A DNA stretch of 52,678 bases. Origin: Klebsormidium nitens (taxonomy: Eukaryota; Plantae; Klebsormidiophyceae). The notes under the pieces were generated by a model. The model searched no databases. It had not been told where the DNA came from and saw only the letters and a list, made by a program, of their open reading frames with translations. Location: the NCBI GenBank assembly GCA_000708835.1, contig DF237215.1, positions 66,096 through 118,773 on the forward strand, in the 5' to 3' direction. The position numbers and the translations under genes were made by a program. Shown piece after piece: positions 16,594 to 46,100 of this stretch; within the stretch, counting starts at the first letter, position 1; each line of letters opens with the position of its first letter.

Positions 16594-16805
16594 TTGACCT
16601 TTCAAGTTTGGAGGGTGATCACAAGCACGAGGGTGTGCTGACGCCATCATTGACCTCTCAAGTTGGAGAGTAATCACAAGCACGGGGGTGTGCTGACGCC
16701 ATCATTGATCTCTCAAGTTGGAGAGTAATCAAAAGCACGAGGGTGTCATCATTGACCTCTCAAGTTGGAGAGTAATCAAAAGCACGAGGGTGTGCTGACG
16801 CCATC
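16594..16805. repeat. Tandem repeat of ~4 copies of a 55-bp unit overlapping the stop codon of the gene at 16776-21165
   Basis: Unit ttgacctctcaagttggagagtaatca(c/a)aagcacgagggtgtgctgacgccatca starts at 16594, 16650, 16705 and 16752. The third copy has an 8-bp deletion. Confidence 0.92.
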
Positions 16806-19800
16806 GATGACGATGTCAGGGCCGCACTGACCGGGGCAGCATCTCATGGTCACCCCGGCTGCGTTGCAGCACTTGTTCGGCAACGGTCCGAATGGGTCGC
16901 AAAAGTCGTTGGTGCAGCTCTGAAGCGGTCCTGCAAAAGGCAGCATCTTTGCGGGTCAGTGACCGAATTTGAGATAACAGAAAGTTAAGGGCGGCTGATG
17001 ATGTGGAAAGTCCCCCCCGTTACTTTATTACGTCATGTATAGGTGACCACTGACAGTGTTGCTGATCAGTGCATGCGTAAGAGCGACGTCGCAAGCAATA
17101 ACTGTCGGTGTTGTTTGCTCAGTTGTCCCATTAGCATACTGGCCGCATACCTGCCCCTTAGGTCCATCTAAGCTTCTGACAGCAATCGACTGGCCCGGTT
17201 TTCAGCTTTCTGATCTGATGACGTCATGAGCTACCGCCCTGAGGGTTCCTTATCGGTGCCAATATGCCTGTCACTCAGCTTCGAAGCCAGTTCGACCCCG
17301 CTCAAAAAAAGCCATCCGTGAGCCTGAGTCAAAAGCCGAAGCTTGGTCCGAAAGCGCAGATGAGAGCGAAGACGAAGTTTTTTGAAAGACGGGGAAACAG
17401 CATACCGTATGAGAAGAGCAAATGCATTACTCAGACGGCGTCTGCACTATTATTAACCGGCTCAGATTCACTATGGCAGCAAATCTGCCTGTACCTTGCA
17501 CTTCGATAAGGAGCAAGTTTACAATCCTGAACGGTTATCAACCGACTAAACCGGACCTGTTGGAGCAGGAGTTGGCGCAGGGGTTGGAGCCGGAGTAGTA
17601 GGAGCCGGAGTAGTAGGAACCGGGGTGGTAGGAGCCGGGGTAGTGGGGACAGGCCCGGGGGTAGCGCCGCCGCTACCGAAGCCGAGGCATGTTGGGTTCG
17701 TGGTCCCGTCAGAGTTGGGCGTACTGGGGCCGCAGAGACCGGGGCAGCGGAGGCCGAGGGATCCCTCGGAGTTGCAGCACCGGTTGGGAGCGGAGCTGGC
17801 GGTGTCGCAGCGGTCGGCGCAGGTGGAGATAGGACCCGGGGTAGGAGCTGGGGTGGTGGGTACCGGGGTGGTCGGAGCCGGGGTGGTGGGAGCCGGGGTG
17901 GTGTGTACCGGGGTGGTGGGAGCCGGGGTGGTGGGAGCCGGGGTGGTGGGTACGGCCGGGGTGGTGGGTACGGCCGGGGTGGTGGGAACCGGGGTGGTGG
18001 GAACCGGGGTGGTGGGAGCCGGGGTGAAAGTCGTGGGCCCGGGGGTTGGTGCAATCACTGAGCACAAAGCAACGCAGTTGATCAGCTGCACTACCTAGGT
18101 CCACTAAAAGCATTGCATAAACATGGAACATGACCTACGCGTGGAGCAATTTAACAAAGACTGGCTTGAGATGGTTAGCCTGCGTCAGCTGAACAATTAG
18201 CGGCTGTCTGATCAAGTGAAGTTGTTGCATGTGCTTTAATCAGCAGTCATGATCGACAGGACGGATTTGATCTGCTTCAGTGGGGAAGGGAAATCGACGT
18301 CACGCTGAAGTCCAGAAAACGTCAGCCAAAACTCCCAGTGGGCGTGTTGCTTTCAAATGCTGCCACGTACGTTGATTGAAAGCTAGCTTGGGCTCACTTT
18401 TCTGCGGCATCGACATAGCTCAGAATCTGAGGAGCCCTTCATCCAAAAGCATGCCTGCAAAGCCTTCTGCTTGATGCCCAGATCACATGAGTTGCTAAAC
18501 ATTTGGAATCTGAGTTCCAAATGCCACGTCATATCAAGTAAGGTGCGAGCTCACCAATGCTCCTGCCCACAACGTAGACAACTGAGTCAAGTTCGAAGTC
18601 CAGTGCATCCGCTATGGCCAATCTGCATGTATGGAACACAGGAAGGTTTGGCGATATTAATCAGGTTTGATAACCAGACTTTAGTGTGGTTCTTTGACCA
18701 ATAACCGCGTTAAGCCATGCTAAAGCCGTGATTAATACTGCTCGAGTCAGGTTATTGGACACTCAACCAGCACTGAACCAGCCCGTCACCAACTATTTTC
18801 AACCGCCAAAAGTCCCTCATGTGCCACGAAGCACGCAAGTGTTCCAGTGACTTCAGTACAGCCCAGTCAATTTCACCTTAGTGTTGGACCTGGATTAAAG
18901 AGAAGCAGGCAAGATTTAACTGCGGATGTCCACATTCACTGGCCGAGGAGTAGTAGACCTACGTAACATTGATTGAGTGCAAAGACATTCGAACTTCGGT
19001 CCGGCCGGGTTTACGTGCTGCAAGGTTAGTATATAGCGACCAACTCGTAACAGCCGGAGATTTGCTCCCCGTTCCTTCTTCGCTGCTTAGATAAAGATGA
19101 CAACTTGGGCTCGCGCAAGAAGAGCCCAAACACTCTGAGGAGACATGATTGGAGGATTAGATTATTGGGCGTTCATTTACCTGATGTGTACAGTGTCTCC
19201 CATAGAGACGGAGATAGGAGCAGTTGTGAGAAGTCTCGTGTAGCCATCGTACGCAATGTGATGTGTGCTATTGTCAGCAAAGTTGTCCACATACTGTGCG
19301 GCATTGCTGTTAGGATTGACATTGTCGATGGATACGGCCTTTCCATCACTTGCCAGGGCCACGTTATCACGGGGTGTAAAGGCGCCGTTCCCCACTGTAC
19401 CGAAAAGAGAGGCAGCAATCAGATTGGCAGAAAGATGGCTGAAAGCAAATTGTTGCAGACCAGAGGGCTTCTAAAAGGCAGATGATTCAGAAACGGAGGG
19501 CTAGATTGGAGCAGACAAAAGGAACACGTGATGTTGAAGAATGTTTGCTTGACAAAGCGGACGGGAAGCAGACAAAGTATAGGGGAGGAGAAGGCTAGAG
19601 AATAAGAGAGCAGTGAAAAGAGTAAAGCAGAGTAAGGGGGGGGGGGGAGAGAAGACAGCTTAGATGTGGGTAGTTAAGTAGAACCATTTTGCAGACGGGT
19701 GATTGGCAGGTTACTTTTGAGAGAAACAGAGCAAAGAAATCAGACCCATCCAGATCCAAGATGCAGGGCCCAACGTGACATGCTTCTTAAAGAATTTGTG

Positions 19801-21165
19801 CGCTGCAAATACTGCAGAGAGAAATGAAAAGCAACGTCATGGAGGCTGCAAGTTGAGAACTTGCCTTCGATCGTTGCAGATTGGGTTTCAAGTCCTTGTC
19901 CAATCAGCTTGAGGCAAGACTATTGGATATTAGAGTACAATCATTCAGAAGGGGGAATTGACATATAGCCACTCACAGCCTCTCATACTCACCTTGTAAC
20001 CGAGAATCATCGAAATATGATTGGAACTCACCTTTCACAAAGAGCGCAAAGATGTCATTGAATGCGTCGACATACTCCAAGTACTCTTCCGACCCAAACA
20101 CATATTGGAATGTGAGCTGGCCATTGCCTTGTGCGGTCCCTTTGAAGTCCAGGATCGAGGCATCATTGGTCGTGCCATTGTTGATCTGGCTCAACAATGA
20201 GTCTCCAGGTTCGCCATTGATTGTAAAGCTGCTCTCCGCGAGGTTCTCGGTCTCAATGGACAGTTCTCCAGAGCCACACGTCAGCACCACTCCGCTGGAA
20301 ATGCCATATTCAGAGTTCAAGGCGTGCGAGCCGTCGAGTTGGAAGATGCCGGAAGCAGAGGTTGCCCCCGTATACACAACGGAAGACGCATCAACAGCGA
20401 GGAGACTGTTGGCTCCGACAAGAGTCGTGGCCAGACCTGGAAGAGTAAAACGGGCTCAATGTCAGATTAACTAGGGACACACATTGACACTATCAGTTCT
20501 TGTTACGTAAATAAGCAGGCGTAAAAGGGGTCTCAGTGTCCAGATCTGGCAGGTACACAATTGAAGGCGACACACGCAGGTGACATCAGCCTTCTAAGCG
20601 GATTGTGCTCAAGGACAGACTCTGTAATTCTACTTTGTCGAGGCAAAATGTCAAACTTCTCTGAGCTGCATGGTAGTCGGAGACTGCATGAATCCCTTCA
20701 GGAAAGAAAGTCTGCTTACGTATGACAAGAAGTTTACAAGGTGCGCTTATTGCTTATTGATTCTGTTGTCAGGATGACGTCAGATTAAATTACAAGCATC
20801 CGACTGGTTTGGGATTTGAGAGCTGCACATCGTGTGAATAGATGTAGGCAGTGTCTCACAAGCAAGCCTGCACGCAAGTGTCTCATAGATGACACACCGG
20901 CAGTAAACCTACCCAAAGCATCGGTAGCCTCCACAAACGAGTTGGCCAACAAACGGCGCTCAGCTCCAGTGCTCGTCCTCAGGATGGTCGCCTTTTGGCG
21001 TGCCGGCTGAATCAATGTTGCCTTGCCAGCGCCGCTCGCTATCTCGCTCAGGGGTCGCATGCCAAGCGCAGTTTCGCTAAGAAAGACGAGAATCAACAGG
21101 AGAACATACGAAGCCACCATAGCTGAGCTGGAGATCCTCGCGGTGGACAGCAGAGAGGGCGCCAT
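16776..21165 (-). CDS. Secreted protein: signal peptide, RRLL, choice-of-anchor L-like domain, PTTPA stalk, Cys module, stalk, Cys module; exons 21165-20913, 20436-20032, 19394-19181, 18622-18555, 18057-17557, 16930-16776, ~531 aa
   Basis: Hydrophobic VLLLILVFLSETALG; FQYVFGSEEYLEYVDAFNDIFALFV; NVAL..DGKAVSIDNVN; IAYDGYTRLLT; HIR|LAIADALDFELDSVVY. Phases 1,1,2,1,1 give one open frame. The exons at 18622 and 16930 are not in the ORF track. The last donor (GTCCGG) is weak. Confidence 0.82.
17560..18040 (-). repeat. Coding 15-bp repeat encoding PTTPA/PTTPV pentapeptides in two blocks flanking a Cys module
   Basis: Repeated ccggggtggtgggag on the + strand; translation PTTPVPTTPAVPTTPA on the - strand. 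Confidence 0.9.
19636..19647. repeat. G12 homopolymer in an intronic purine-rich tract
   Basis: Seen directly in the sequence. Confidence 0.9.
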
Positions 21166-22424
21166 TGATGTTGGTGCTCTACTTGTGCTGCAAGCTAGGA
21201 ATCATCAAGCTGGGCCCCTGGAAATGGCGCTAGATCTTTCGAGGAAGCAAACCCACTTGTCCAGATTCATCTTCAAAAATGCTCTCGGATTACTCTTCAA
21301 GCGAGCTGCTGAGACTCAGAGAGTACATTAGGTATATTGTATACGTACTACGAATGGAACTGGAAAGAATCGCCCTGCACTAAGGTGTCACATGTATCGT
21401 ATGCTGCACATGGTGTCCTTCAGCCCCGAACAGCTACCGGTAGTCACTTGCGCCGGCGGCGTGCGCCAATTGGCTGCCATGCAGTGCACTGAGACGGTAC
21501 GGTTACCGGTAGCTGCCAGTGCACGTGGCCGCCGCCCTCCGCCTTGCCGGCGGCAGCCCGGGGCTACATATCTACCGTACTACGTAGTACGCACGGTACA
21601 GGTAACAGGTTACAGCCTGAGGGCCCAGGCCCCTACTACGGTACGGTTACCGGTATACCAACGACGGAGTTCTGACATCGTCGGCTCCCAGGCCGACTGT
21701 TCTCCGGTCAGGATCGGCTGGACCTCTGAACCGGTCGGCTTGTGCGATCAGCCAAACACCTGATGATTCTAGCTGTCGGCTTTTCCGCCGACGCCCCTCG
21801 GTTGAGTCGTCGGCTGACGTTTGCCCGGTGTGACGGCTCGTGTCGAGCACTGATTATTATACGAACGTTGCAATTAGGGCCGGCGATCGGACTGACGGCA
21901 CTAAGTCCCACTGCACGGACAGCCCGCTATTTCCGGTAAGTCGGTTCAGGGATGCCCTCAAGCTGCCAGTTGGTAGTCCGATTGACTGAACCGTAATTTC
22001 CGTCCAGTCAACCGGTACGGAAGATCCGACCACACGCAGCTTCCAGTCGAAAGAATCTCAGCAGTGAGCACTGAGCAGGAGTCAGGACTAGGACTCGGGA
22101 GTCGGGAGTCGGGAGGATGCAGGGCACAATTTCGCGGGATCGCCCAATCCATACGTCGGCCCTCGGGCTGTGACTTGTGATGCGCAACCCCCTTTTTAGG
22201 GCGCGGGGCCGGCCTCCATGCGCATTGAGACTGAGTCGTGTCCGGACTCGCTCCTCAAAGATATTAGGGCATAAGTTGTGGGGTTGCTTACTCTGCAGTA
22301 CGTGGTGGCGCAGCGCCATTGGGTATTCGACCTTAGCGTCAAACAGGGTCAGTGAAAGGTCGGTCAAGCTAGTATATACGACTTGGCGACTGTGGGCCGA
22401 GGGCTTTGCCATCTCTCTCGTGCA
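21166..22424. promoter_or_regulatory. Divergent intergenic region between the two Cys-module genes, CpG/GTAC-rich with internal repeats
   Basis: Head-to-head ATGs at 21165 and 22425. An exact 18-bp repeat lies at 21494 and 21638 and a perfect 16-bp palindrome at 21576-21591. Regulatory role is inferred. Confidence 0.4.
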
Positions 22425-25400
22425 ATGGATGCCTTTAATGCAAGGAGCTGGACTTTCTGGATGGGTAGACTCCCTTGCTGCCTCCTCTCCTGCTTCCTGA
22501 TTTTTCTGCAGTCAGCCGTGCTCCTTGCCGGGTTTAGTGTGGCTACTGACAACGGCAAAGTGATCATCCTGGAGGATAGTGTGATTGGAAATATTGGCTC
22601 TTTGGAAGCTCAAGCAGTCATCAAGGCTGGCTTCACTCCTGACATTGTCAATGCCACAGTATGGGCCACCATGACAACTGCACAATTTGAGGCCTACCGT
22701 GGAATCTTGATTGGAGATCCAGGATGTTCTTTGCTTGCAAAAGGTGAGTCCGAGGTTGGAGTTGTGGGATTAAATACCCTGCCTTCTCCATCGGCCAGGT
22801 GTCATATCTGCCTGCTGCAGGTACTTCAATGACGTCATATTGACATGTAATTATGTCCATGGTGCAATTATGCATGATCGTCCCCTCAGGCCAGAGGGCT
22901 TTACTGACCAACCTTTAGCTGGCCCTACTGTTGGCAGCCAGTGCAAAATCTCTGTGAATGCATTGAACTGCCAGCTTGCTTGCCAAAGCTGCTTGGTGAG
23001 TAGTACAATCCTGTTCTCGCAAGATTGCCAGCTGCATCTGCAATTTTGATGAATTACTGACCTGCAAAAGTATAGCCCGTCTTGCTTTTGAAGCTTACGC
23101 ATATGATTGCCGGTTGCAGCTGCCGACTTTCCCCTATATTTCAACTATGGGGAGGCGGCCATAAACAACGCACCCACCTGGATCGCTGCTGTCACTGGAA
23201 ATATCCTCATTGTTGGGACAGACCCAGCCTACCATTACAATGAGGGCAGGACAGGAGCCAAAGTCCTGATTGAGAGTGGCGTTGCCTTTGCAATATCCAG
23301 CTCAATGGGAACGGGGGCCTATATCTGCCTGTCCTGCTCTGGGGGTGCAGGTCCTGATTATGAGAGTTGGCTGAGCAACTTTGGAGGCACGTGGAAGCTC
23401 CGTCAGCCAGACTGTGACTCCACAATCACAATATGTGAGAATCAAAACTTCGAAACTTGTAGGACTCATGAAGATCTTGAGATATGTGAATCAGACTTGT
23501 ATTCTTGTGGAGTCATGCAGTCTTTGAAAGGATGAATGGCCAGGGCTGCAATGCAAACCTTGCATATGGAGCAAGGTCTTTGCTGGATATATCTTCGATG
23601 CAACGCAGGATCCTACCAGTACCTCGGTATTGCCTCTGTTTGCTTTGGCATCTCCAGTAAACAGATTAGAGTGTCCCTGATTCAGCAGTGACAAGCATGT
23701 CGACTATTTCTTACAGTGGCCACTCATCCAGCCCTTTCCAACCTCACAAGCGCCGACCTATCCGACTGGCAGTGCTCCTCCCACGAGACCTTCGAATCCT
23801 TCAACACAGAAAGGTTCTTGCCACTGGCAAAAGCCAGCGACAATGATCTGCCCTACATTGTTGCCAGTGGACAAAATCTCGCTGCAATCAGTCCCCCGTT
23901 TCCACCTCAACTCCAGCCCCCTCCACCTTACCCCCCACTCTTCAATCCTCCACCACTTGGCTCTTTCCCTCCTGCAAGTTTACCCCCTCCGTCTACCACC
24001 TCTGCCTCGAGTACGAATGGTGAGTAGGAAGTGGGAAGTCTTGAACTGCACAACATGCTGCTCTTTGCGTTGTATTCTGCTTGCTTACAAGTCACCTCAA
24101 GTTGATACTGGAAACGTATAACACACTGCCTCCAGCTTTCATTGATAGGCATTGGTTGAAGCTTGACTATTTACCAGTACGTGTAAGATCGAGATTAAAC
24201 TGCCCTTTTGAGCTGTTGTTTCTTTGTTCCTTGCCAGCTCTTGAGCGTTGCAACGTCCCCTGTGACCCTTACTCCAGCCTTCCTAACCGCTGCTGTGATG
24301 CTGAGGGCCTTCTTGGCATATGCTGCCCTGGCGCTTGTGGAAATACGGTGGCCTTATCAGGAGGGGGGTCAGTTGCTACTTGTTTGGGCCCTGGTGGGGC
24401 CTCCCCTATCAATTATCCTTCGACAAGTCCAAGCATTCCGCCACTAAACCCGACAGAGTCCCCTTCCCCAAGCGGGACGCCTGCTCCAACAGTGAGGAGT
24501 AAGTCAAGTACTGGTCGCAATGCTTCTGAGTTTGAAGTCTGAATAGAGGGCTATTTAAGGTTCAACTTCGTGCTACTGCACCATCTTCTTTCAGCATTGT
24601 ATTGTGCTCGCGCACTGTGTTTGGAGCGTGTGTTTGGAGCAGAACATTACTAAGAATCTATGAAACCCATTTCGAGTCATCATTACATGGTATCGATCTG
24701 GAACGCTTTGTCTGCACAGGTGAACTCCAGCGCTGCAGTGATCTGTGCCCTGACGCCAATTTCCCTAATCGTTGTTGCGATGCCGTTGGACTCTCAGCTG
24801 TATGCTGCCCCGCCCAATGCGGTGATATCGTCTCTTTGCCGGGAGGAGGGTCCGTTGCAACGTGCCAGGGCTTGGGAGGGACCGTCCCAACCTTGACATC
24901 CCAACCACTTATACCGACTCCTTCGAACACCCGTGGCACAGATGGGCCAATTCTTTTTCCATTTCAATTTTGCGACCCAGATTCCGACTTTCCAAATCGG
25001 GTGAGTTGCTTACTTTTATGACTAGGTGATTGATGTCGAGACGAGTTCAAACCGAGACTTTCCAGGCTCTCAGTGTCGGCGTTTTCCTCATCGCCAAACC
25101 CTGACGCTTCTTGATTGTCTAGAGAAAAGCACACCAATCAATCTTTCTGGGGACGTTCTTAGCGTCGATATGACCAGATCTACTGCATGCCACCATGACG
25201 TCTTGAAGAAAGTCGGTTCGAAAAGAATGTAACTGATGCCGATGAAAACAAGGGATTTGCCTTCCGTCCAAGAAAACAAAGCTTTGTAGACCATCGTGAA
25301 GCCACAACTTCTCCATAAATTTATCAATCATCTTCATGCAGCCCAGTCCCTTTCTGCGGCAGCAATAAGCTTCTGAAGCTCGTTGCCTAAGGGGTTCGGC

Positions 25401-28400
25401 TATTTGTCCAGAAGTTTCTAGAACCATGCAACTGACTCTCGTTGGACATCTTGAAACACATGTACATCGTCTGTTGAAAGGGATCTGTTCATTCATTGAA
25501 GACGTTGGAAGTCTCAGAGCTTTGGCATGGCAATTTCTAGTCTAACCAGGCGTCAATCTCCGAACTGGCCACGACGCCACCATTCATACCAGTGCCTAAC
25601 TAGACTGGTATCCTCCTTTTTGCAGTGCTATAACGTAGACGGCTCCAGCTTTACCTGTTGTGGCCAGGAAAGCTGCCGCACAGGTCCCGCCAGTGCTATT
25701 CCTCTCTGCGCTAACGGCCTTCCCGGAGTGACACCTACCCAAGCGCCCGGTATCCCCAGTCCGAGCCCCAGTACGACAAGCTCAACCCCCAGCACTACGA
25801 GCCCACTAACCCCGAGCCCAACACCCGGCACCCCCGAGCCGAGCGCAACTTCTTCTAGCACTCCAAGCCCGACCCCAAGCACTACCAGTCCAACGCCCAG
25901 CATGACAGTACCGAGCCCAACGCCAAGCACCCCAAGCCCCACGACCAGCAGTCCAAGCCCGACCCCAAGCACACCGAACCCCGTTTCGAGCACCACAGCC
26001 CCGACTACCAGCACACCCACTCCTTCCCCGAGCACTACTCCGAGCACTCCGGGCCCCACTTCAAGCACCCCGAGCCCAACTCCCAGCACTCCTAGCACTC
26101 CGAGCCCGACCCCAGGCACTCCCAGTCCAACTTCCAGCACTTCGAATCCCACGCCAAGCCCCCCGAGCCCAGTCCCAAGCACCCCGAGCCCCACGACCAG
26201 CACCCCGAGTCCGACCTCAAGCACCCCGAGCCCACTTCCGAGCACAACAGCCCCCATTACAAGCACACCGACCCCTTCTCCGAGGACTACTTCGAGCACT
26301 CCGAGCCCAACGCCAGGCACAACAGCCCCCACTACCAGCACACCGACCCCTTCTCTGAGCACTCCGAGCCCATCGCCGAGCACACCAAGCCCGGCCACAG
26401 GCACTCCGAGCCCAGTCCCAAGCACCCCAAGCGCCACGACCAGCACACCGAGTCCGACCCCAAGCACACCGAGCCCCATCCCCAGCACAACAGCGCCCAC
26501 TACCAACACCCCCACTCCTTCGCCAATCACACCCAGCCCTACGCCGAGTACACCGAGCCCAAAGCCAAGTACACCGGCTCCCAGCCCCACTACACCGAGC
26601 CCTACTTCGACAAGCGCAACAGGTAAGATATGACGACTTGTTCGTAGTGCAGACTACCATTCGATTGATCGAAATCCGTACTCAATTTGTCTCGTGATTG
26701 GTCAGGTTGCATTCGAATCAACTTGAAGCCAGCCTTGCAATGGCGTTTGATCATTGATTCGATCTGGTTGCGCTGATTTACAGTAGTAGCCCTCGTAGTA
26801 GCAAGATAAATCGGTTTGAGCAGTTCCAATAACACGATATCGAAACGGGAAGATGTGCCAATGCTCGTCTATCCGAGACTGAATTCAGATGTCAGATGAG
26901 TTGATTAGAAGCGGTTTGAGATATTTGCTAAATCGATCTCGAAGCTCCTATGTTGATACACAGCTAGCGGCCACCGTGTATCCACGAGCAGTTGCTGAGC
27001 ATTTATAGTTCGTGGCGAGTCGTTAGAAACAGATTGGAGTGCCCACTTGTCTGAGGAGGTTTTCAACTTTCATATGATTGTGATTCGTGTCTGTTGCCCA
27101 CAGTCCCGTGTACAAGCCCCTTACAGCCCCAAGCATCACTCAGAAGGAGAGTGCTGGTGGTATTATCCAGAGTATTCAAGGAGACGGCTATTGTGGTCTG
27201 TCAGACACCGTACCCGCGGATATCCCACCAGAGTATTTCGACGTCTCTTATGCCATCGACTTTTACGGGAGAAATGTCGATGATGCCGCGCCAGGGGAGG
27301 TTTTCAGCTACACAGTGAAGGTGTCGGGGCCCTATTTCGAGGCTCTTCTCGAGGTGAACTCGGTGACAAATGTTATCACGTTCCAAGTGGAGGGGGCTAC
27401 GGTCCAGATCGATGCCACTACCGGCGATATCCTGGATCAACGCGACGCACCGGCATCGGCTGAAAGCGGCGGACGCAAATTGCTGGCTGAGAGCAAAGAA
27501 CTTTCGCCACCCTGCGCAAAGAGGGAGGCAACATGCACCGGGGTGACGTCGTTCCAGACAGCGACGCTTTGCCAGGGTATCACTAAGACGTCTCTCTTGA
27601 AAACGGCCTGCGCCAAGGTTGCAAGCTTCTTTCGATCGAGAGTGCCGAAGTTGCCCCCGACAATCCTGGATAACTTGTGCAGCTTTTTGGTGGACACAAC
27701 AAAAAAAGGATGTGAGAAAGCAATCGACTGTGAGACGTACGGGCTAGGGTGAGCGTTTTTACTGCCTGTACTAGTCATTTCCAATCGTAACTCGTAGCCT
27801 AGTTCTGCATGTCCAGACTCCAGACAAAACCTTCTGAGCATTGACCCTTCTTCAGAGCTGACCGTATCGGTCAGATCCGCATAGTAGTGCAGCTGGGGGT
27901 CTTCAAGCTGTGGAGTTTCTTTTGGTCACGTGCATCTCTGCGAAGGTCGACCCTGACACCTGATCAAAGTTTGGTTCTTGAAGAGCCTTTCTTTCGGTTG
28001 GATGTGCGAGTTCTTTCTAGAACCCGTTTACTGATCATCAATCTGCTCCATCTAGTAATGGAGCGGACTCAGGGGACTCGAGAGACGTGCGTGGTTTCGT
28101 CTTTGCTCAAGAAAGACAAACTTGCGCTGGTTTATCCATACTACTTGAACTTGAAGTACTCGCATGAAGCTTTCCGAAACAATCTGGCTGTTGAGAACTG
28201 CTTATATCAAGTCTGCCGTTGTGGTCTTGTCGACTGATTGTTCTTGATCTTCGTGTCTGCAGGACTTGTTGCAACTTTACACATTCATGTGCCGACTTCG
28301 ATTTCACATTCTCGGGGTCCTTCGACCAGTGCTTGATTGATTGCGTACAGATTGCCACTGATTGCTGCACAAGCGTCCCACTGCCTCCTGTCGCGGTTCA

Positions 28401-28452
28401 GATATGCATTAACATCAACTACAGTGCTTGTACACCTGAATGCGTTTGTTAA
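22425..28452 (+). CDS. Large secreted modular protein: signal peptide, bacterial-like unknown domain, poly-Pro linker, 3 Cys modules, ~290-aa Ser/Pro/Thr stalk, acidic domain, RKLL, 18-Cys tail; exons 22425-22743, 23120-23434, 23717-24019, 24238-24498, 24720-25000, 25626-26622, 27127-27748, 28263-28452, ~1095 aa
   Basis: Hydrophobic [18 protein letters not shown]. All eight exons join with GT-AG sites in phases 1,1,1,1,0,1,2 and form one open frame ending CTPECVC*. Confidence 0.8.
25735..26622 (+). repeat. Coding Ser/Pro/Thr repeat (PSTPSPT..) with higher-order STTAP(T/I)T(S/N)TPTPS units
   Basis: Translation of exon 6 of the gene at 22425-28452. Confidence 0.9.
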
Positions 28453-29674
28453 ATCCGTTTAAAGGAACGGCCGGGACTGTAGTTCAGAAGCAAGTGTGAT
28501 TAATAAGGGGGTTTCGGTCGCGTATACGTACGATTATGTATTTGCTGGCGGCCCGTTCTACTCTGGGTTTGTAAATTTTGCATCAGTGTTTAACGTGAAA
28601 TTTATCAGACAATATTTAGAAGAACACAACCTCATAGGCAAATAGATGGTTCATCGCATTGGACAATAAGACGCAGATTGCCCGTCAGATTGTCTTCCCG
28701 GCCACTCGCTGGAGTATTGAGCATATTCTATCATGACGCCTAGGACCTTGAGATCTGACACACGAGCTGACGTCATTGCGACTGCCACTCAAACCGACAA
28801 GCCAAATGCAAACGGTGACCGCGCCACGCGAGCTCAAACGGGCAATATCCAGTTCGTTCAATGGTACTCGATCAATGATGTGTAGCGCGCGCGCGGTCCC
28901 AACGCACATTGCTCCGAGGCTCAGATATTCAAGCGAAAAACGGGCGCGCTCTTTCAAAATGCAACTCTCGATCGATTGGCTAAGGTTGAAGACAGATCGA
29001 CCTCGCATCCAACGCTTGTTAACGGGGGAAGCTACTAGCGTCTGGAACGTACTAATTAATGATTTAATATGCAGCCTTTTGCAATCTAAATTAACCTGTT
29101 GCTGGTTGGGGATGCAAAAACGATTACGGGTAGTGAAACATATAACAACAATAGCCGAAAAATCCATGATCGCCGAACAACCTCCGACCTTAAACAACTT
29201 CATGAATTGCCCACATCATTCGTCTTGATGTTACTGCGCACAAGCATTCAGTTGGACTGGTCGAAGGAACACAAGCGTTGAATGTCAAACTAAGCTCTCT
29301 ACCCTGCATCGGTCTTTCAGCTTTGCTAGCTTTGCGTATACTACCTCTAGCTACGACTTGCATGAATGATGGCTAGAGAGCGTGATTATGGGCTAATTAC
29401 ACACAAAATGTACGATCATCTGGCTACGTTCTTACAATTGGCTCTACCTAAGAGCCTACGCCGCTCCTTATTGTCACGTATATACTTCACCCTAAAACGT
29501 GCAGTGACATTGGCCCACCGGTCACCTTGTCCAGTACTATTCCCTTTGACTTCTAAGTATACACATCTAATCAGATACTCTTGCACAACTTGATCCACGA
29601 CACCACCCCTCTGGCCGAGTATCTTAAAGGCACGTATGCCACGCCGCTGCTGCGACCTGTGGTCTTAGGAGGAC

Positions 29675-32600
29675 CTATCGGTCTTTGACCGTTGCTACCT
29701 TGGAACGCATGATCAAGAAGCAGACCCTGCAGGATTGACCAGTTGCGGCAATCAGGATGCGAAACTTCCAGAACGCGGACGGGTTGAAAGGGACAGCAGA
29801 AACCTGTCCACCTCAACCCACCCCGGTATGCAGAAATGAGCTCTGATGGTCGATAATCGTCCGACGTCTGATATGCGATCGGTAAGTCGGAATGAGCAGA
29901 AAAGCGCAACCGATCACAGAAGCTCTACAGGATCGAGGTGAAGGACCCGACGGAAATCTTCTTAAAGAGAGCCACAAAGTGCTTCGGTCTTTTCGGGTTG
30001 ACCGCCTTGAACTTTTGGAGTCGAGCTAGATGAAGCACGTCATCAGCATTGGATGTCCTGACAATTCTGGAAAGACTGGGCAAGGCAAGTCTACGGCCTT
30101 CCCCTTTACATCCGTCTACTTTGTCGCAACATTGAGCTAAGTGCAGCGGATCTAGTACGGACCTAAGGGCCCAACACTCAACCGCCCGAGGACTGCTGTT
30201 CCTCTAAAGTCAGTCGGGTTCTTCAGGACTTGAGAGCTCACCAGAAGATTGAGAGCACGTTGGCGAAGAGGACGCGCAGCTGCGGGGGCAGGAAACTGTA
30301 GTTGATGAACGCGACGAGCGGCCACAGCTGCGAGGCGACAGAGAAGGCTCAGCTGGTATCAAATCTGGCTGAGATATCCGGAGTCATCGGTCATCAAGAT
30401 CAACGAGGTGGCTTCAAATAAGATCACCACAATCGTCGTCTATCGGACAGGACAAAGAAGTGCTGAAATGTCTTCAGTCGCCTGCTGCCAGACGGTTCAG
30501 ACGGTCTTGAAAGGCTGAACTCCTGTAGCGTCGAGTTAGCGAAGCCAACCACAGTCCTCCACAGATCCCTGCTTTTCTTGCTATCTTCGGTTCTTTCGTC
30601 ATGACCGCGACCGACTTTTCCAGAGAGAGTCGCTTCCCGATCTGCCAGGACCGCCAAAGAACTGGCCAAAGGGTTGGTGCTTTGGAGAGAAGACAACACA
30701 GTGCAGCGGACCTACTGTTGAACACTTCTAGCTTCGCCTCCAATAACAGACTCGTATCAAGCGGTCCCACATCGGTAAACTACAAACACCTGAAGTCCTT
30801 GACGGGCAAGTGGGTTCTTACATTTAGAAAAAAGGCATTGATAAGCGGCCATGATAGATTGCTGTCTACCGAGACATCACTCGACTGCAAGACATCCCTG
30901 TAGCTCCCTTCCTTTTTGAGACACCCTATTTTTCTTACAAGCATGACAAAGCCTTGAGGAACGATGAAATAGGAACTCGGACGGAGCTTCTTGGGTGACG
31001 TCAAAAGATGGCAAGGCGGTGATCCGACAAAATGGCGATTACCCAAAGTTCCGAAACACCTTTCGGGGTAGCTTTTAGTAACCGACTCGAAAGAGGACAA
31101 CACGTGTCGGAAGTAATGGACTAGCGGTGCAACTCCGGCAAACCTGCGCTATGCCTCCACTTACTGTTGCGCCCGTATGTGAAGTGTTCAGATCGCACGC
31201 CTTTCTTAGACGAAGTGACATCAAGATCGGCTTCAAGCGAAAAGGCGGTAGGTCGCAAAACCGCCAACGTGGCAACTGACCCTAAGCTTGGGTAGTCAAG
31301 TTTGATATTGGCCAGGCTGAAATATCAGAGAAGCACTGCTGTGAGGAAGCACGTGGCCAGTCCGGGTTGACTTCAAACTCCTCAAATTTTCATCTCAATC
31401 CTTTCACGAGGCGAAGGCCTCGCTTACCTTCCAGCCCTGCTTCTGAACGCCCCAGTAATCTCTCCGCACTTTTGCCTTGGTCGCGGCCCAGGTCAGACCT
31501 GCAGAAATGGGATCGTCGTTCTCTGTGGTCAACAGACTGACCGTTGACACTTGAGATCCAACAGCGGCAGGATGTCGGCTTCTCTGGACTCTTGGAAGAA
31601 TGCGGTTCCTAACCAGGAGAAGAACAGAACGCGCCTATACGGAACAGAGAATGACAACTTGGGCAAGAACAGACTCGACTTGATTGCCCTTAGTCGAGAA
31701 ATCAAACAATCGGTACTCTCGTAGCAAAGAACGGTGTCCTAGCTCTGTTGGACCATCGGACCCATTCGATACACAAGGGTGTATGTACAAGAGCTTCAGT
31801 GTACGAGATATTGAGGTTCTAGCTTACGAGCCTCGGATGATTCAGCTAAGGCCTAGGTATCCGATTCAACAGACAAACGGCAGTGTCGTCATGTGTCACA
31901 GGATGTCACAAGCATTTCTCATTTCTCAATTTCCTGCATTTACGTAAACCATGATTGCAACAAGTTAACAGAAAGCCGTTTACAAAACGAGATTGACATG
32001 TTTTAGAACCAGGGCTGCGCCAAAGTTGAGCCCTTCTACTGAGCCCTTCTACCAGTGAATCGTTCTAGAATGTTGCAAGGGGCTCCACACAAACCCTGTA
32101 AGAATGACAAAACGCTCTCAAACGAAGAAGGCCGTACCAGTAGACGTCATCCACATGGCTGGGTATCTCAAAAGTGTGTCCGCTTCAAGAACGACCCCAC
32201 AGCAATCCTTCAATTATCAACGATTGAGGCTGGGTACCTAAACAGCATCAATTTCCCAAACCAGAGTATCTCATTACAGGTACAGAAGGAGGCCTCCTCC
32301 CTTACCTTCGACCACGTACGCCCGGTACGTCAGGATTGCGAGGTTGTACATGACGCCAAAGGTGAGCTGCTCAACCACGACCTTTTGGATGACGGTGGAC
32401 GGGTCCGTTTTTGCACCAAAGACCCGGTCCATGATCTTGTGGAAAAAATGGTATGTCGGACCGCCGAAGCACAGCCCGTAAACCTGAGGAGGGTCAGCTG
32501 AAAGTGGTCACTTCTGAAAGGACGGAACATGGGACAATGCCAATGTCAACTCATGCACACAGGGGAGACAAGGCTTCTGTGTTGCCAAATGTTGGCAGAT

Positions 32601-33464
32601 GATACTGTTCACGGCAATAACTACCCGCCAGCCAGCTAGCTGGGGCACTGCCCAGATCCCGGACTCAAGCACGTCTTTCAGGTTCCACATTGATGGCAGT
32701 ATCTGAATGAAATTTACCAGGTTCTGCGCAGTCCGCCTTGTGGTGGGTCAAAACCCATACAAGCTTTTTATGGACTCAGAAGCAGTTGGGTGCTGGACCA
32801 GCTGCCAAGTTACCAACACTGTCTCAGCTTACTACCTGGAACAGATCGTAGAACCAGGCTGATAAAAGGTAAAAGGCTGGTGGTCCCCAAATCAAGAAAA
32901 AACACTCGCAAACGCAAAACCTTGGCAGCTTTCTGCGAACTAGACCAGCATCGTTTTGGTGATACCAAGATCAATGTTTAGATGATGAGACATCTTTGCA
33001 AAAGAGATTGGTCTCGCAGCTCACCGCCATGAGGGCACTCTTCTTGGGCTGCAGATGCTTTGCGCCCCCCATCTTCTGTGCCAGGACATCAGCTACCGCT
33101 GCTAGCGTGCCTGATGTTATCGCCTGAGGGCATTGAGGAGCACATGATGTCAGGAGTTCATCAATGTAAACACCCAGCTGGGGTGTGTTGATCCTCAAAA
33201 GAAGAGCCAATCTGCCGCAATTACATTCTGTGAGTAGAGTCAGTCTATGAAATATGACGATGGTGGATCGATGATTATCTGCAATCAAGCTACTAATACT
33301 CATGTGAAACAGGACACCTGCTTTGAGATCAGAAAATCAACGACTTGTGCCCCACGCTTATACTGCATGCACCGGCATTGCTTGTCACTTACCTTCGTGA
33401 TCAAGGGCCGCTTGCCCAAAGAATGCAAGTATCGCTGCCAGGCGACCACCAAAAGCGTCCCCAT
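29675..33464 (-). CDS. PMP22: PMP22/PXMP2/Mpv17-family membrane protein; exons 33464-33393, 33123-33025, 32483-32306, 31498-31428, 30327-30242, 29726-29675, 185 aa
   Basis: WQRYLHSLGKRPLITK|AITSGTLAAVADVLAQKM..|VYGLCFGGPTYHFFHKIMDRVF..TVIQKVVVEQLTF..|GLTW..YWGVQKQGWK|LWPLVAFINYSFLPPQLRVLFANVLSIFW|VCFL. Exons total 558 nt in frame; most are not in the ORF track. Confidence 0.88.
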
Positions 33465-34193
33465 AATTGATTCCCGCAATGCTATTCGCCAACACACAAA
33501 AATTGGTGAGGAAACTGGAAGCTCTGGCAATTGTTCGTTTGCACGCAGGCAAGCAGAGAGAAAAGTGTACAATTAGTAGCCAGTTTTACCCAGATGCTAA
33601 TGAGCAGCACCTCTAGCAACCAGAACCGTGCGACAGCCGCCCGTCTTCCTCCAAGCTAGGCTTTTCTTCAAGGCTTGCATGCTCTTGCCAGTGTTGGTCA
33701 GCTTGCGAGGTCGGCCTGCTTTGACACATACAGCGGCAATCTTTTCTAGAGGACAATTGGAAATAAATACAATTGAGGTGGAAATGCAGAGAGCCGGTTG
33801 AGAAGCTGACGGTTGACGGTCATATGGCTCTGCTTAGAGCAGATCGCGTTACGCTGCTGCTATTTATTGACGGAACGTTACAATCTTTGCGAGCGCTTGC
33901 CCTACAGTCTCGCAGAATCTTGCGGGACAAGACGGCACCGCCCAGCGTGACGGTGCTCACGATTGTTGCGGTAGTGTTTATTTTCCACGATTAGTTTGCA
34001 GTTTGCAAAGTATTTTGGACGAATATGGCAGAAAAAGGGCAGAATGAGGGAAGAAAATGCCGTCTGTCAACATGAAGGTGTGAGGAAGCAAGGGGGAAGG
34101 GCAGGGCCGCTTGCTTGCAAGCTTTCCAGGCCATGTCAGGCCAAGTGAAAGGGTGAACCACAATTTTAACCCGGAACCGGTTGCCATCGCAGG
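33465..34193. promoter_or_regulatory. Short divergent intergenic region between PMP22 and the CCDC57-like gene
   Basis: Head-to-head ATGs at 33464 (-) and 34194 (+). Function is inferred. Confidence 0.35.
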
Positions 34194-40733: not shown

Positions 40734-41320
40734 GGTCGCCTCGAAGTAAGTTGCGTTGTAAATTTGACTCGAATCATGGAGTCTGAGCTTCGTTCCATTT
40801 TAGACAGTGCCAGGTTGACGTCATCCCTGGTCACAGGCCCTACATAGACGGCTGCCAACCGGTTGCGCACCAACTTGTACACATGTTATACTTAACTGTA
40901 CATCCCGATTGCTGTGAGCTCAAGTACGGTAGAGAGCACACGTACAAAAAGGACCTCAAGCTAAGCCGTTTCTCCAACAAGGGTGCACACAATCGATCAT
41001 AAGCCCCCACGTACGAAGCATGCGCGCCACTGCAGCGCATTGGGCTCGGATTATATACATTTGGCGTAGCTAGGCATTGAAGCATGTCATTGCATACAAG
41101 CCGCCCACGTCATGCCATGCACGCAAGAGTTTATAGCGTCAAACGGTTGGAGGACGGAGCCGGGAGAAATCGTCGAGCAACAGTTTAAATGCATTATTGA
41201 GCAGCAATGGATAGAGTAGGTAACGAAGCACGATTTATTCAGGACTCAGGAGTCAGGCGAGGTCCGACGACCGTGCGGCGTGTACCCGTCGTAAGTTTCC
41301 CGACTCTGGTGCATGACGCA

Positions 41321-41495
41321 AGTGTGCCCTAACCGCGGTGTGCCCTAAGATAGGCACCCGGGGGACGGGTAGGGTTAGCTTGGTGGTTAAGGTGGGTCGG
41401 GGTGCGGAGCGCGGGAAGCTCAAAAGGTTAGGTTTTTTATAGTTTGTTCGGTCGGGGTCTACGGATCTTAGGGCACACTGCTCTTCGGGCACACT
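41321..41495. mobile_element. 175-bp MITE-like element with 31-bp terminal inverted repeats
   Basis: Left arm agtgtgccctaaccgcggtgtgccctaagat versus the reverse complement of the right arm agtgtgcccgaagagcagtgtgccctaagat (27/31). The interior is copy B of the dispersed repeat. No clear TSD. Confidence 0.7.
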
Positions 41496-42543
41496 ATCTA
41501 GAGTTACCAGTATGGTACGGGATAGGTACCCCTGTCACGGTGGCCCGCCCCGTGACGTTCGGGCAGATAATTTGCCCAACATATTAGCCTGTTCACAACA
41601 GTATCCTGACTTACGTAACCCCGGGGTTACCGCAGAATTGCTACATACGCATCAGAGGCGAATCCAAGCTAGGTAACTCGAGCTATGTAACTAACCGCAT
41701 GTAGCGCCGGCCTAACTTTTTTTACGCCAAGCCAGGCACTATCCATGTTGTATAAACCGGGAGCTTCTATATCACGACCATCAAACAGCATGCAATTGCC
41801 CAGTATGATGAAAATTGTTTCCGGAATTGAAGTAACTTATGCCACTGAGCATGCAGCATTATTCCATAACAGTGAGAAGTGCAAGCACGTCTCACATGAG
41901 TGGAGATAGGTTTGAAAAACCGAAAAAGAGAGCAGAGCTGCCAGTGCCAGAATGATGTACTGTAAGCAGCTAGATACTGCACAAATGATCCAATGAAATC
42001 TCCATTCTAACGGGGACAAGTCCAGGGGTCTCAGGAGCTTGAATCCTACTCTGCCACAAGGTAACTGACTTAACTGTGTCCTGGCCGTCACTGCTCCTAT
42101 ATGTGCCAAAGCCCCCCAGAACAGCAGACGAGGAGTACGAGGAGGATCACTCTGCAAACATCATGCCATGATACTCAAAAGATGTGCGGCAAAGAAGCAT
42201 GCAAGGCACGTTAACTTGAAGTTTTTGTCCCAGGTGTATGAGATCACACGAGCACCGGCCGGCCCCCAGGCATACGTATTACCGTACCTACTTCCGAGTC
42301 GTACATACCTAGTGCATACCGTACTACAGCTGCTTTGCAAGCTGGCCGGTACCTGCGCTATTCCCGGTACCCTGCATAATTCGCTGCTCAGTGCTGACTC
42401 AGAACTCTGTGCTGAGCAGTGAGGATCCCCCCCAATTCTGCCCGGTATGGCCCCGGGCGATTGCGTACCAGCCGCGCCCGTACCCGGGGCGTTGTCTCGG
42501 CTGTGCAAATGTCGACATAAGGAAGCCCGTCACCCGACTGTCC

Positions 42544-42905
42544 GTGTTCACAAAACTTTGCGTGTGCACACTTTCAAAAGGGATCTTACCCGTACTGCCA
42601 TTCTGATTCGCCCCCAAAGCTCGCGAATAATTATTTTCAAACTTTTTAGGATTTCGCACCAGCCAAACGAGTTTAAATCTATTTTCGTTCTTGCCATTTT
42701 TACTGCTAAAATAGCTGTTTTTGGCTTTCAACTTTTCGCACCGGGCACCAAATAATTTTCGGGAATTTTCGCCGAGGCTGAAAATATTTATCTTTAGGCG
42801 AATTCACAATGGCAGTACGGGTAGTAGTAGGTATACCGGTAATATCTTTGCAGACAGCCAAAGCCAGAATCCATTGAAAGTGTGCACACGCAAGATTTTG
42901 AACAC
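42544..42905. mobile_element. Outer MITE-like element with ~27-32-bp TIRs, interrupted by an inner MITE
   Basis: caaaactttgcgtgtgcacactttcaa (42551-42577) versus ttgaaagtgtgcacacgcaagattttg (42874-42900), 25/27 inverted match, extendable by gtgtt/aacac. Confidence 0.7.
42589..42821. mobile_element. Inner 233-bp MITE with TA target-site duplication (Tc1/mariner-like)
   Basis: TA|cccgtactgccattctgattcgcc ... ggcgaattcacaatggcagtacggg|TA with an AT-rich interior. Confidence 0.7.
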
Positions 42906-43120
42906 CCCATGCATTAAATGCATGATGCAGGGCCTAGACTCCTGAGCCCTGTGCCTGAGCCCACACTGCACAGGCCCCAATCGAACAGACTGCTAGACGA
43001 AAGAGGGCAGTAGGTATTCGAATCAAGGCAAGTCAAATCTGGACAAAGAAGTCATACGCGCATTTAGGTAGGTAGTTTGAACGCCTCGGCCATGGGATAC
43101 TTGGCAATACTCCTCGCAAC

Positions 43121-46100
43121 ATGGCTTCCTCCCCGCCCTGCCGTCTGCAAGCGCTACGAGGGCTGGCCCTCGTGACACTCCTAGTCCTGCAGCTAGGGCA
43201 AACCGCATCCGCATTGAACTCGCGGATAGCGTCCGTGGCAAGCTCCAGGCGGTTGCTGCAGGCAGGCGCAGGGCCCAATCGTGAGCACCTTCGCTTTCGA
43301 GACTTTTCCAGGCCGTACTTGCTAGTTTGTCAAGTAGAAAGGTGGACTCCAACATAGTCCCAGCATTGCTTCTGGTCAATGTGCATTCCAAATGCGTTTC
43401 TTGGTTCATATATATAAGAATGAGTGGCGTCCTGATTGCTGCTAGGTTTGATAAGTAGCTTTCTGAAGGCCCTCCGCTCGTGTGAACGACAAAGAGTATT
43501 TTGGATTAAGAAAGCTGGCGAGCAGGTCCCCCAATACTTGCATGCCACAACTGCAGTTTCAGCGTCTGCAAAGTTGAGAATTTTGATTTTTTGGGGGTCA
43601 GCAGCTTGTGTCTTGAAGTCTCGTCTTTTCCTGTCCAGGCAGTATCTTCGCTATGGAATGTAGATGTGTATGTAAAGGAAGCACAGGAAATGTTAGCATT
43701 AGTGATGTGATCATGTCATCACAAATGACCAGGTCTAGGATTATGGTCCTGGTGTTCATTGCATCAGTTATATGCAGAATACAGGAACAGTCTATCGTTC
43801 ACAACCCGACAAGTTAGATACTTATGTCACCGCTAAAAGAGCTCCAAGGTATTTTGTCAAGGGTCCCCTGACTGGACCAAGTGGAAATGCTTTTAGCAAG
43901 GCAGTCTTTCTGTTATCTGAGGAACTCACTTTCATCGCCTCTACTGTGCAGCGCTCTGCCCCGACGCGGCATTTCCAAATCAGGTAACGTCCCGACACAC
44001 GCTTCAGCAGTTGCATCATTTTTGCTGTCTAGCAAGCAAACTTTGTTGAGAAGCGAGCGCCTCCCCCTCCTCTTTCACAGCCTAATGCCATCCCCACATT
44101 TCTGTACCAGTGCTACAATCCTGCCGGCAGCTCGTACGTCGGCTGCCAAGGGTCATGTGGCGCCTCCGTCAACAACCAGGCCACATGCGCTGACGGCATT
44201 CAAGGGCCTACAAGCAGCACCCCCCCTGCTTCGACTACTCCAAGCAGCGCCCCCCCTTCCTCCACACCAAGCGCCACCCCCCCTTCTTCTACACCAAGCC
44301 CCACCCGCCCCAGTGGCCCCGCTCCTAGTCCTGCACCCGCCCTCCCAAAGCCAACACCGGCAGGTGATATTGGTCGCTTTGTTTGACCAGTGCTTTCCCT
44401 GATTGAGGATCAGGCATAAAGCCACTCTGTACCTGAGGGATAGCTTGTTTTGGACAGCTGCAGGCAGGTTCATATCTTCCACAAACGTGGACAAATTTAA
44501 CCAGAGCGGAACTGAGATGTACATTTGAGCAAGGAAGGAGCAGCCACCTGTGCATTGTATTGCGATTGTCTGAGAAAACCCGTTTGAGTGAGCTGGGAGT
44601 ACGGATCATGATTGAGGAGATGCTTCACCAGTGGTCAGGTAGAAGAGAGCTCCTTGAAGCAGGCCCCATTCACTGCGCATTGAATGTGTCGTTCCCTTTT
44701 TCAGAGAAGCCACCTTTGCCAAAGTAGGCCCCCTTATCTGCAGGTGGTGCGCCAAACTGTCCTTCAGGCCCTTTCCGGAACGCATGCTTCACTCCAAGCG
44801 GGGACGCCTACCTTTGCTGCTCGAGTGCTGGGTGCGGTCCTTCCAACCAAGCCAGCAATACTGCCTCCTGCGCTGACAACAAGTACCTTCCCATTGTCCC
44901 TGCAATCTATACCTTTGGTGAGACTTGACTTCTGCGACTTGACAGTCAAGAGCCACACCTTTCTGGAAGTGAACTTTGAAAAGGACATGAACTTTTCCGA
45001 AGGAAGATGTCAGAAAATGCTTTGGAAGGGGCAACCTTAATGCCTCTCTTTGTATGATTAGCCAGGCCTTTCTATGTCACGCATCAAACACGTACCACAG
45101 CTGATAAGCTTCTAAGGGCCAGGCTTGCTACTTAGTCTCTGAGTCTGCTGGAACGAAGTAGATTAGAGGCACACTTTCTTTATTATCTTCCTGGAATGCG
45201 GATCTGGTTTGCCTACGAGTGGAGGAAGTTCTTCCAAGCCTCCATCTTTGCCTCGCACAACGCCATGCCTTGTACCAGCAAGGGCAGTCTCAGGAAAGCC
45301 AGGTTACTCCTTGATCAGCGGGTTGTCCATGTGTTCCATGCTTTGGCGGGAAGGTAGTGGCTTGGGCTGATTAATTCTTCTTAACTTCGACCAATTTTGA
45401 TTGGAATGCATGTCACACTTGAGTCTTTCAAGTTAGGTTTCGAGATTGTCTCGTCTTATAGTGCTGGCCTTGCTTTCAAGTTGCTTGCTGGCTTGAGTTT
45501 GAACAGTAGCTCGACACGAATTAGTTCAACCTCCTGTCCACAATCATCAGATTCCACCGTGACCTTTGGTTCAGATTGGTAGCGTAGAAGGATGAACAGA
45601 AGTCTTAAGGAAGTAGAACGCTGAGAAACAGACTTTGCAGCAGCCGTTGCTTGACAAAAAATGTCGCGCTGTAAGTGATCCACAGCTGACCACTCTTTCA
45701 TCGGTGGAATCGACCTCACACGGAGCACAACGGGCTAACCAATTCTTTTCCGTGTGCAGGGGACTCTTTGGTGGACGTAGGCAATGGCCCGTATCTTGGC
45801 AATGGGGATGGCCTCCCCTTCCCCCCAAGCCCGCCTTATTTCCCGTAAGCTGGCCCCACAATGATTGATATCAAAACACATGTCGTAGCTTCTAGCAGGT
45901 TCGGAAGGCTTCTAGCTCTGCCTTGACGTAAAATAGAACTCTGTGTCACTTCATCGATTCCTTCTGGATGAGGATGATGGAGGGTGGTCATTTCCGAGCT
46001 TAAAAGACCGGCTCTACTACATGCCGCAAACGAATTCGAAGCCGCTGGCAAAGGGGTAAGAGCAGGGAGGCACTGTGCTCAAATCCACGTCCCACTTGCT

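Follow-up and report, generated by a model that had tools for sequence, protein, structure and literature searches.

In this paper we ask whether a streptophyte alga has put together some of its secreted proteins by the shuffling of exons that begin and end in phase 1. Such class 1-1 shuffling has been treated as restricted to Metazoa and as an animal innovation tied to multicellularity (Patthy 2021, PMC8001218). The question is raised by a stretch of 52,678 nucleotides (nt) of Klebsormidium nitens, which is part of scaffold KFL_00266 and which we call the window; all positions below refer to it. Three of its genes, here named G4, G5 and G6, share a small cysteine (Cys)-rich module, and a first-pass annotation of the window had read the intron phases of these genes as an exon-shuffling signature. 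Our analysis upholds one part of this claim, a layout that permits shuffling, with one module in unrelated hosts, symmetric exons and a pair of neighbouring sister modules. The other part, an excess of phase 1 specific to the module boundaries, is not clearly supported once the remaining introns of the same genes and their composition are considered. Our preferred history of the module is the shuffling of cassettes of module plus linker together with tandem duplication, and we give this reading a probability of about one half.

The module itself is an orphan of about 40 residues with six or eight Cys, and it represents an undescribed, lineage-restricted family. From 32 aligned modules we derive the consensus core C-D-P-x-S-x2-P-N-Q-C-[F/Y/C]-N-x2-G-x4-C-C-x3-C-x8-12-C. 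The 8-Cys variant has C-x3 ahead of this core, and the extra Cys pair (C-x3-C in front and CC after PNR) is found in G4a, G4b, G5a, G5b and P0009. A linker rich in proline, threonine and serine (Pro/Thr/Ser) normally follows the module. When the six-frame translation was searched with the module profile, the window proved to contain exactly seven copies, and relics were absent. Among 1.84 billion representative proteins the five-module profile matched 16, two of which are repeat artefacts and about 14 of which are credible, and all credible relatives are proteins from K. nitens or from Joint Genome Institute (JGI) metagenomes. None of the modules has a match in Pfam or NCBIfam, and no profile or fold match links the module to any described Cys-rich binding domain, hevein (chitin-binding type 1) included. 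A PDB sequence search with the module gave nothing significant (best match E=0.35), a Foldseek search with its AlphaFold model, a low-confidence prediction (pLDDT 66) that shows a single small beta hairpin, gave nothing at E<1, and the protein atlas gave no usable result for it. When metagenomes were scanned with the 8-Cys alignment, none of the 115 pattern matches was confirmed. The scan with the 6-Cys alignment led to one locus of 1.3 kilobases (kb), L001, in which positions 468-1118 encode a dirigent/allene-oxide-cyclase-like domain with one 6-Cys module at its end, in a single open reading frame with no introns.

The module is present in at least 10 different architectures. Its partners in the window are a choice-of-anchor L domain (G4), an N-terminal region of unknown type (G5) and a GDSL esterase (G6), and elsewhere they are the dirigent-like domain of L001, a protein named LTD (P0011) and other unrelated N-terminal regions. 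Because Pro/Thr/Ser linkers tie the module to extracellular domains, it may serve extracellular enzymes as an appendage for binding or anchoring, judging by architecture only.

How the module might have come into these hosts is suggested by the introns around it (Table 1). G5a and G6b had been described as lying on symmetric 1-1 exons; this is borne out in our rebuilt models, and G4a lies on such an exon too. In five of the seven modules (G5a, G5b, G4b, G6a and G6b) a phase-1 acceptor stands one to five codons ahead of the first Cys, with the linker on the same exon. Introns are found at both cassette edges for G5a, G4a, G6a and G6b. All eight introns that flank cassettes are in phase 1 in the manual models, while one of them (from 26623) is in phase 2 in the public model. 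G5a and G5b are sister modules in the module tree (98% bootstrap), are 62% identical, lie next to each other in one gene and start four to five codons after a phase-1 acceptor, which is as expected from tandem duplication of a symmetric exon. This tandem duplication is well supported. In the same tree the 8-Cys modules of G4, G5 and P0009 fall together (91%) despite otherwise unrelated host proteins.

We suggest that the units of this history would be cassettes of module and linker, bounded by phase-1 introns. Such a cassette may have been duplicated in tandem, from G5a to G5b, and cassettes may have been recombined between neighbouring genes, which would have joined the module to choice-of-anchor L, to the N-terminal region of G5 and to the GDSL esterase. 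The recombination would have taken place in introns. The predominance of phase 1 is a permissive condition, largely set by composition, and not itself a proof of shuffling.

The phases were read from models of G4, G5 and G6 that we made manually from GT..AG sites and reading frames. Exact look-ups identify G5 as P0001 (GAQ86035.1, KFL_002660140) and G6 as P0004 (GAQ86038.1, KFL_002660170), both on the same scaffold of 118,773 base pairs. These two proteins were mapped back onto the window with a script that demands GT/GC..AG introns and exact translation; for G4 there is the manual model only, no annotated protein having been retrieved. G4 and G5 stand head to head with 1.26 kb between them, and 15 kb lie between the end of G5 and G6, which follows downstream. 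In the translations each of the three has a hydrophobic, signal-peptide-like stretch at its N-terminus. The phases reported before (1,1,2,1,1 for G4; 1,1,1,1,0,1,2 for G5; 1,0,1,1 for the first part of G6) are all reproduced in the rebuilt models. Those of the public proteins agree for five of the seven introns of the manual G5 model (the public model has eight) and for all four of G6.

It is very improbable that faulty gene models have produced the pattern. The public models, which are independent, match nine of the eleven listed introns of G5 and G6, the G4 exons form one contiguous NF038133 match, all 17 introns are of the form GT..CAG with strong consensus, and the disputed alternatives in G6 keep the same phase. 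An artefact of this kind would find support in the differences between public and manual models, which concern the Pro/Thr/Ser exon of G5 and one G6 acceptor, and in the lack of an annotated protein for G4. Our home-made exon-chain finder, based on splice-site matrices and codon scores, also proved unreliable, over-predicting tiny exons or skipping real ones, and was abandoned. A search for transcript-derived protein fragments across the junctions found only P0004 itself for its residues 1-230 and no match for the G5b exon.

The disagreement in G5 concerns two introns. The public model has an extra frame-changing intron (25728-26125, 398 nt) in the Pro/Thr/Ser exon and reads the rest as a His/Pro/Glu-rich peptide. 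It then uses the acceptor 27103/27104 in phase 2, where the manual model has a phase-1 donor at 26622/26623 and the acceptor 27126/27127. The acceptor score favours the public version (5.9 versus -2.2), and the uniform Pro/Thr/Ser repeat favours a single frame throughout the exon. Between 25728 and 26630 all three frames are open, and the public splice may reflect either a true change of frame or an error of annotation.

In G6 the annotated acceptor of the intron inside G6a lies 30 nt upstream of ours (intron end 44080 versus 44110), is in frame and adds PNAIPTFLYQ; the intron is in phase 0 either way. The 31 other aligned modules all lack an insertion here, which favours the acceptor at 44110. 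This acceptor restores the invariant P-N-x-C spacing and has a branch-point-like CTAAT motif about 24 nt upstream (about 44083-44087), but the splice-site score favours the annotated one (10.3 versus -0.8). Another in-frame acceptor, at 43921/43922, would give G6a a C-x3-C prefix like that of G5b and has a poor score. The GDSL domain of G6 matches PF00657 with 53.8 bits against a cut-off of 23.6 and contains FGDSLVDVGNG, split by intron 4. The public G6 protein stops short, running into the intron after 47462, and later GDSL blocks are seen at 48441-48681 (LYLAGARVF...) and 49133-49370 (...FFDGLHGT). For the junction after 47462 no GT/GC..AG solution was found, and it was excluded from the phase counts.

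The exons of G4 were searched one by one against NF038133. Exons 2, 3 and 4 match the contiguous profile positions 5-128, 126-196 and 198-218, which supports those junctions; the scores are 96 bits (exon 2) and 39 bits (exon 3), with a cut-off of 27, and exon 4 has E=0.027. The joined frame has a single stop, the terminal one (16776-16778), and starts at 21165 or 21120. At either edge of the choice-of-anchor L domain there is a phase-1 intron: intron 1 precedes profile position 5, and intron 4 follows position 218. A full domain of this family, which is defined on bacterial proteins, is spread over three exons of an algal gene (18555-20436, minus strand). At the other end of G4, a tandem repeat of 55 base pairs (16594-16805, about four copies, 84% matches) covers the last codons and the stop and runs into the 3' flank, and the repeated unit includes the stop and the end of module G4b.

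Table 1. Positions and phases of the module genes, their exons, introns and modules, and intron phases of the genes that served as local background
Feature	Position	Strand	Phase	Description
Gene G4	16776..21165	minus	1,1,2,1,1	signal peptide, choice-of-anchor L (three exons), Pro/Thr linker, G4a, linker, G4b, stop
G4 exons	20913-21165, 20032-20436, 19181-19394, 18555-18622, 17557-18057, 16776-16930	minus		manual model
G4 introns	20437-20912, 19395-20031, 18623-19180, 18058-18554, 16931-17556	minus	1, 1, 2, 1, 1	
G4a exon	17557..18057	minus	symmetric 1-1	501 nt; module G4a (17675-17830) between two Pro/Thr-rich linkers
G4 terminal exon	16776..16930	minus	start 1	starts five codons before G4b (16779-16916); ends with stop
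Module G4a	17830..17675	minus		profile search
Module G4b	16916..16779	minus		profile search
Gene G5 (KFL_002660140)	22425..28452	plus		signal peptide, N-terminal region of unknown type, G5a, G5b, G5c, about 300 residues rich in Pro/Thr/Ser, Cys-rich C-terminal region
G5 phase-1 introns	22744-23119, 23435-23716, 24020-24237, 24499-24719	plus	1	manual model and P0001 mapping
G5a exon	24238..24498	plus	symmetric 1-1	261 nt; module G5a and 37-residue linker
G5b/G5c exon	24720..25000	plus	start 1, end 0	whole G5b, linker, first half of G5c (24962-25000)
G5c internal intron	25001..25625	plus	0	GTGAGT...TTTTTGCAG, between FPNR and CYN
G5 Pro/Thr/Ser exon	25626..26622	plus	end 1	second half of G5c (25626-25718), then Pro/Thr/Ser-rich run; donor G|GTAAGA
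G5 last intron	27749-28262	plus	2	
Module G5a	24240-24395	plus		profile search
Module G5b	24725-24877	plus		profile search
Module G5c	24962-25000 + 25626-25718	plus		profile search
Gene G6 (KFL_002660170)	43121..49370	plus		signal peptide, G6a, G6b, GDSL esterase
G6 introns	43281-43951, 43984-44080 or -44110, 44364-44743, 44918-45759	plus	1, 0, 1, 1	
G6a first half	43952..43983	plus	acceptor 1, donor 0	
G6a internal intron	43984..44110	plus	0	donor GTAACG
G6a second half exon	44111..44363	plus	donor 1	G6a part (44111-44197) and Pro/Ser/Thr linker
G6b exon	44744..44917	plus	symmetric 1-1	174 nt; G6b (44746-44880) and first GDSL-domain residues
Module G6a	43952-43983 + 44111-44197	plus		profile search
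Module G6b	44746-44880	plus		profile search
Background, MSH6-like gene			1,0,0,0,0	
Background, PRAI			0	GC-AG intron
Background, SAL1-like gene			0	low confidence; one junction, gene with duplicated DYGVQAV exon
Background, coiled-coil gene			2,0,2,0	
Background, GDSL catalytic part of G6			2,0,1	

Several of our results weigh against the shuffling of cassettes, and they concern the layout, the statistics of the phases and the intron shared by G5c and G6a. As to the layout, no intron separates G5b from G5c, and introns 2 (phase 1) and 3 (phase 2) of G4 fall within the choice-of-anchor L domain, at about profile positions 127 and 197. P0005, P0007, P0015 and P0017, metagenome proteins that are taken as uninterrupted open reading frame calls, have no intron in or before their modules, and L001, read directly as a single open reading frame, has a module with no intron inside or in front of it. 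A BLAST comparison of the introns with each other, over all pairs, gave chance-level matches only and no DNA similarity. The statement that the inter-domain introns are almost all in phase 1 has to be divided accordingly. The phases are as stated, but inter-domain says too much, because introns 2 and 3 of G4 lie inside a domain, intron 1 of G5 falls within the N-terminal region, the donor of G6 intron 4 splits the Gly codon of FGDS with the 3' edge of the G6b exon four to five residues inside the GDSL domain, and G5b and half of G5c share one exon.

As to the phases, 12 of the 16 introns in the module genes are in phase 1, compared with 2 of 14 in the other genes of the window (Fisher p=0.0013). 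For this local background, junctions were placed between peptide anchors that are conserved, and their splice scores served to rank them. The excess extends over the genes as a whole and is not specific to the boundaries of modules: the flanking introns are in phase 1 in 8 of 8 cases and the other introns of the same genes in 4 of 8 (Fisher p=0.077). The sample comprises 16 introns, some related by descent, which are not independent observations because duplicated modules inherit theirs.

A rival explanation is that the phases reflect compositional bias only, with introns gained independently at G|G and AG|G sites, which in secreted proteins rich in Gly, Ala, Pro, Thr and Ser are mostly in phase 1, and with the module spread in some other way, such as duplication within exons, gene fusion or unequal crossing-over. 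On this reading the phases would carry no information about shuffling. We regard this as a serious possibility, with the odds somewhat against it. With the real junctions excluded, AG|G occurs 24, 26 and 10 times in phases 0, 1 and 2 of the module genes (43% phase 1) and 132, 38 and 51 times in the MSH6 and coiled-coil genes (17%), and CAG|G is in phase 1 in 60% of cases in the module genes and 21% in the background genes. Phase-1 introns split 12 codons, and in nine of these the first letter is G (Gly, Ala or Val). Introns of phases 1 and 2 also occur inside a domain that is known from bacterial proteins and in a bacterium would have been intronless, and the modules of relatives are uninterrupted by introns. 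The predominance of class 1-1 has been explained in the same way, by Gly-rich linkers and signal-peptide regions (Patthy 2021, PMC8001218). Against this rival, the observed 75% of phase 1 exceeds the 43% expected from AG|G (binomial p=0.0098); with 60% as the expectation p is 0.17, and whether the count goes beyond chance depends on the expectation chosen, the excess over composition being weak. Of the 12 phase-1 junctions, only about 5 carry AG on the side of the exon. In five modules the acceptors form a tight cluster shortly before the first Cys, and the pair G5a and G5b looks as if a symmetric exon had been cleanly duplicated. Codon composition, rich in Gly, Ala, Pro, Thr and Ser and poor in Lys, Glu and Gln, largely accounts for the phase-1 excess. 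As the layout is to this extent predicted by codon make-up, shuffling of the cassettes is plausible but not proven.

A phase-0 intron had further been described as common to G5c and G6a, and its position is confirmed: the donors CGG|GTGAGT (25001) and CAG|GTAACG (43984) are both at profile position 15, directly after the residue that follows Pro-Asn. The introns themselves measure 625 nt in G5c and 127 nt in G6a. In the best module tree the two modules are not sisters, as G5c groups with P0012_26 and P0007_8 (91% and 84%) and G6a with G6b and P0003_a (82% and 76%). This raises the question whether the intron was gained twice at one site, in place of being inherited from a common ancestor. Parallel gain would fit the separate tree groups, and G5c and G6a are only 40% identical, against 51-54% between G5c and its neighbours in the tree. 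It would also fit the lack of a break at this position in P0007_8 (from a protein taken as an uninterrupted open reading frame call), which is among the two closest relatives of G5c, the lack of the phase-0 intron in G6b, the sister of G6a, and two introns with no similarity and a fivefold difference in length. Common descent is favoured by a position that is identical in profile coordinates, by an exon flank (CAG|T or CGG|T) that makes a poor proto-splice site, and by the codons TTT CCA AAT, which are the same just before both donors. Forcing G5c and G6a into one clade costs 8.9 log-likelihood units, and the approximately unbiased (AU) test, on 41 columns only, does not reject this clade (p=0.099). 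Parallel gain is a tenable reading, though not one we would bet on, and both it and descent with several losses remain as explanations of this intron.

Some other features of the window may be of use to later annotators. The SAL1-like nucleotidase gene (5410-6394, minus strand) has two neighbouring DYGVQAV[I/V]SY... stretches, which may be a duplicated or an alternative exon. In the PRAI-like gene (645-1493) the best junction is GC-AG (CAG|GCAAGT ... TTGCAG), and the second exon carries a long low-complexity insert within the TIM-barrel region. Between G5 and the coiled-coil gene, about 5.5 kb (28600-34100) are without a convincing long coding frame.

The wider claim would be that K. nitens built part of its secreted proteome by the class 1-1 shuffling of exon cassettes that is a hallmark of animals, with orphan Cys-rich modules of its own. 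At present we consider this rather unlikely. If it were true, K. nitens, a streptophyte alga close to land-plant ancestry, would provide a second, independent case of class 1-1 shuffling, and such shuffling might be a general consequence of having intron-rich genes for secreted proteins. The genes would also offer a system in which the part played by composition, through proto-splice sites of phase 1 in linkers, could be told apart from that of actual shuffling. The window itself defines an undescribed, lineage-restricted module family and a concrete gene list, which for K. nitens comprises at least KFL_001660180, KFL_004060070, KFL_000460100, KFL_008230020, KFL_001810160, KFL_000760015 and KFL_001030160. 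Within the literature searched, no publication dealing with exon shuffling or intron phases in Klebsormidium came up.

The nearest known parallel in gene structure is the class 1-1 modules of animals described by Patthy, such as those of the epidermal growth factor (EGF), kringle and fibronectin types. These are likewise small, disulfide-rich extracellular modules in unrelated secreted hosts, with phase-1 flanks, symmetric 1-1 exons, linkers rich in small residues and signal peptides. The differences are that our host is a streptophyte alga, that the module is an orphan without a Pfam family and that three genes were examined. Here, moreover, one pair of modules has no intron between them, two modules have an internal phase-0 intron and the excess over composition is weak.

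In protein architecture there are other parallels. Fungal CBM1 cellulases and plant class I chitinases with a hevein domain are built of a binding module, a glycosylated linker and an enzyme. They resemble the proteins described here in combining a short Cys-rich module and a Pro/Thr/Ser linker with a catalytic or other extracellular domain. In contrast to these, the K. nitens module has no sequence or fold match to hevein, CBM1 or any solved structure, and it may be N-terminal, internal or C-terminal and may stand in tandem. The volvocine pherophorins and GP1 are hydroxyproline-rich glycoproteins in which Pro-rich rods and globular Cys-containing domains are combined in varied arrangements; to our knowledge, analysis of intron phases lies outside the usual description of these families. 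They share with G4, G5 and G6 that they are extracellular proteins of the green lineage in which Pro-rich stretches are joined with Cys-containing globular domains, but they belong to another lineage and have other globular domains, with no homology detected between the two groups.

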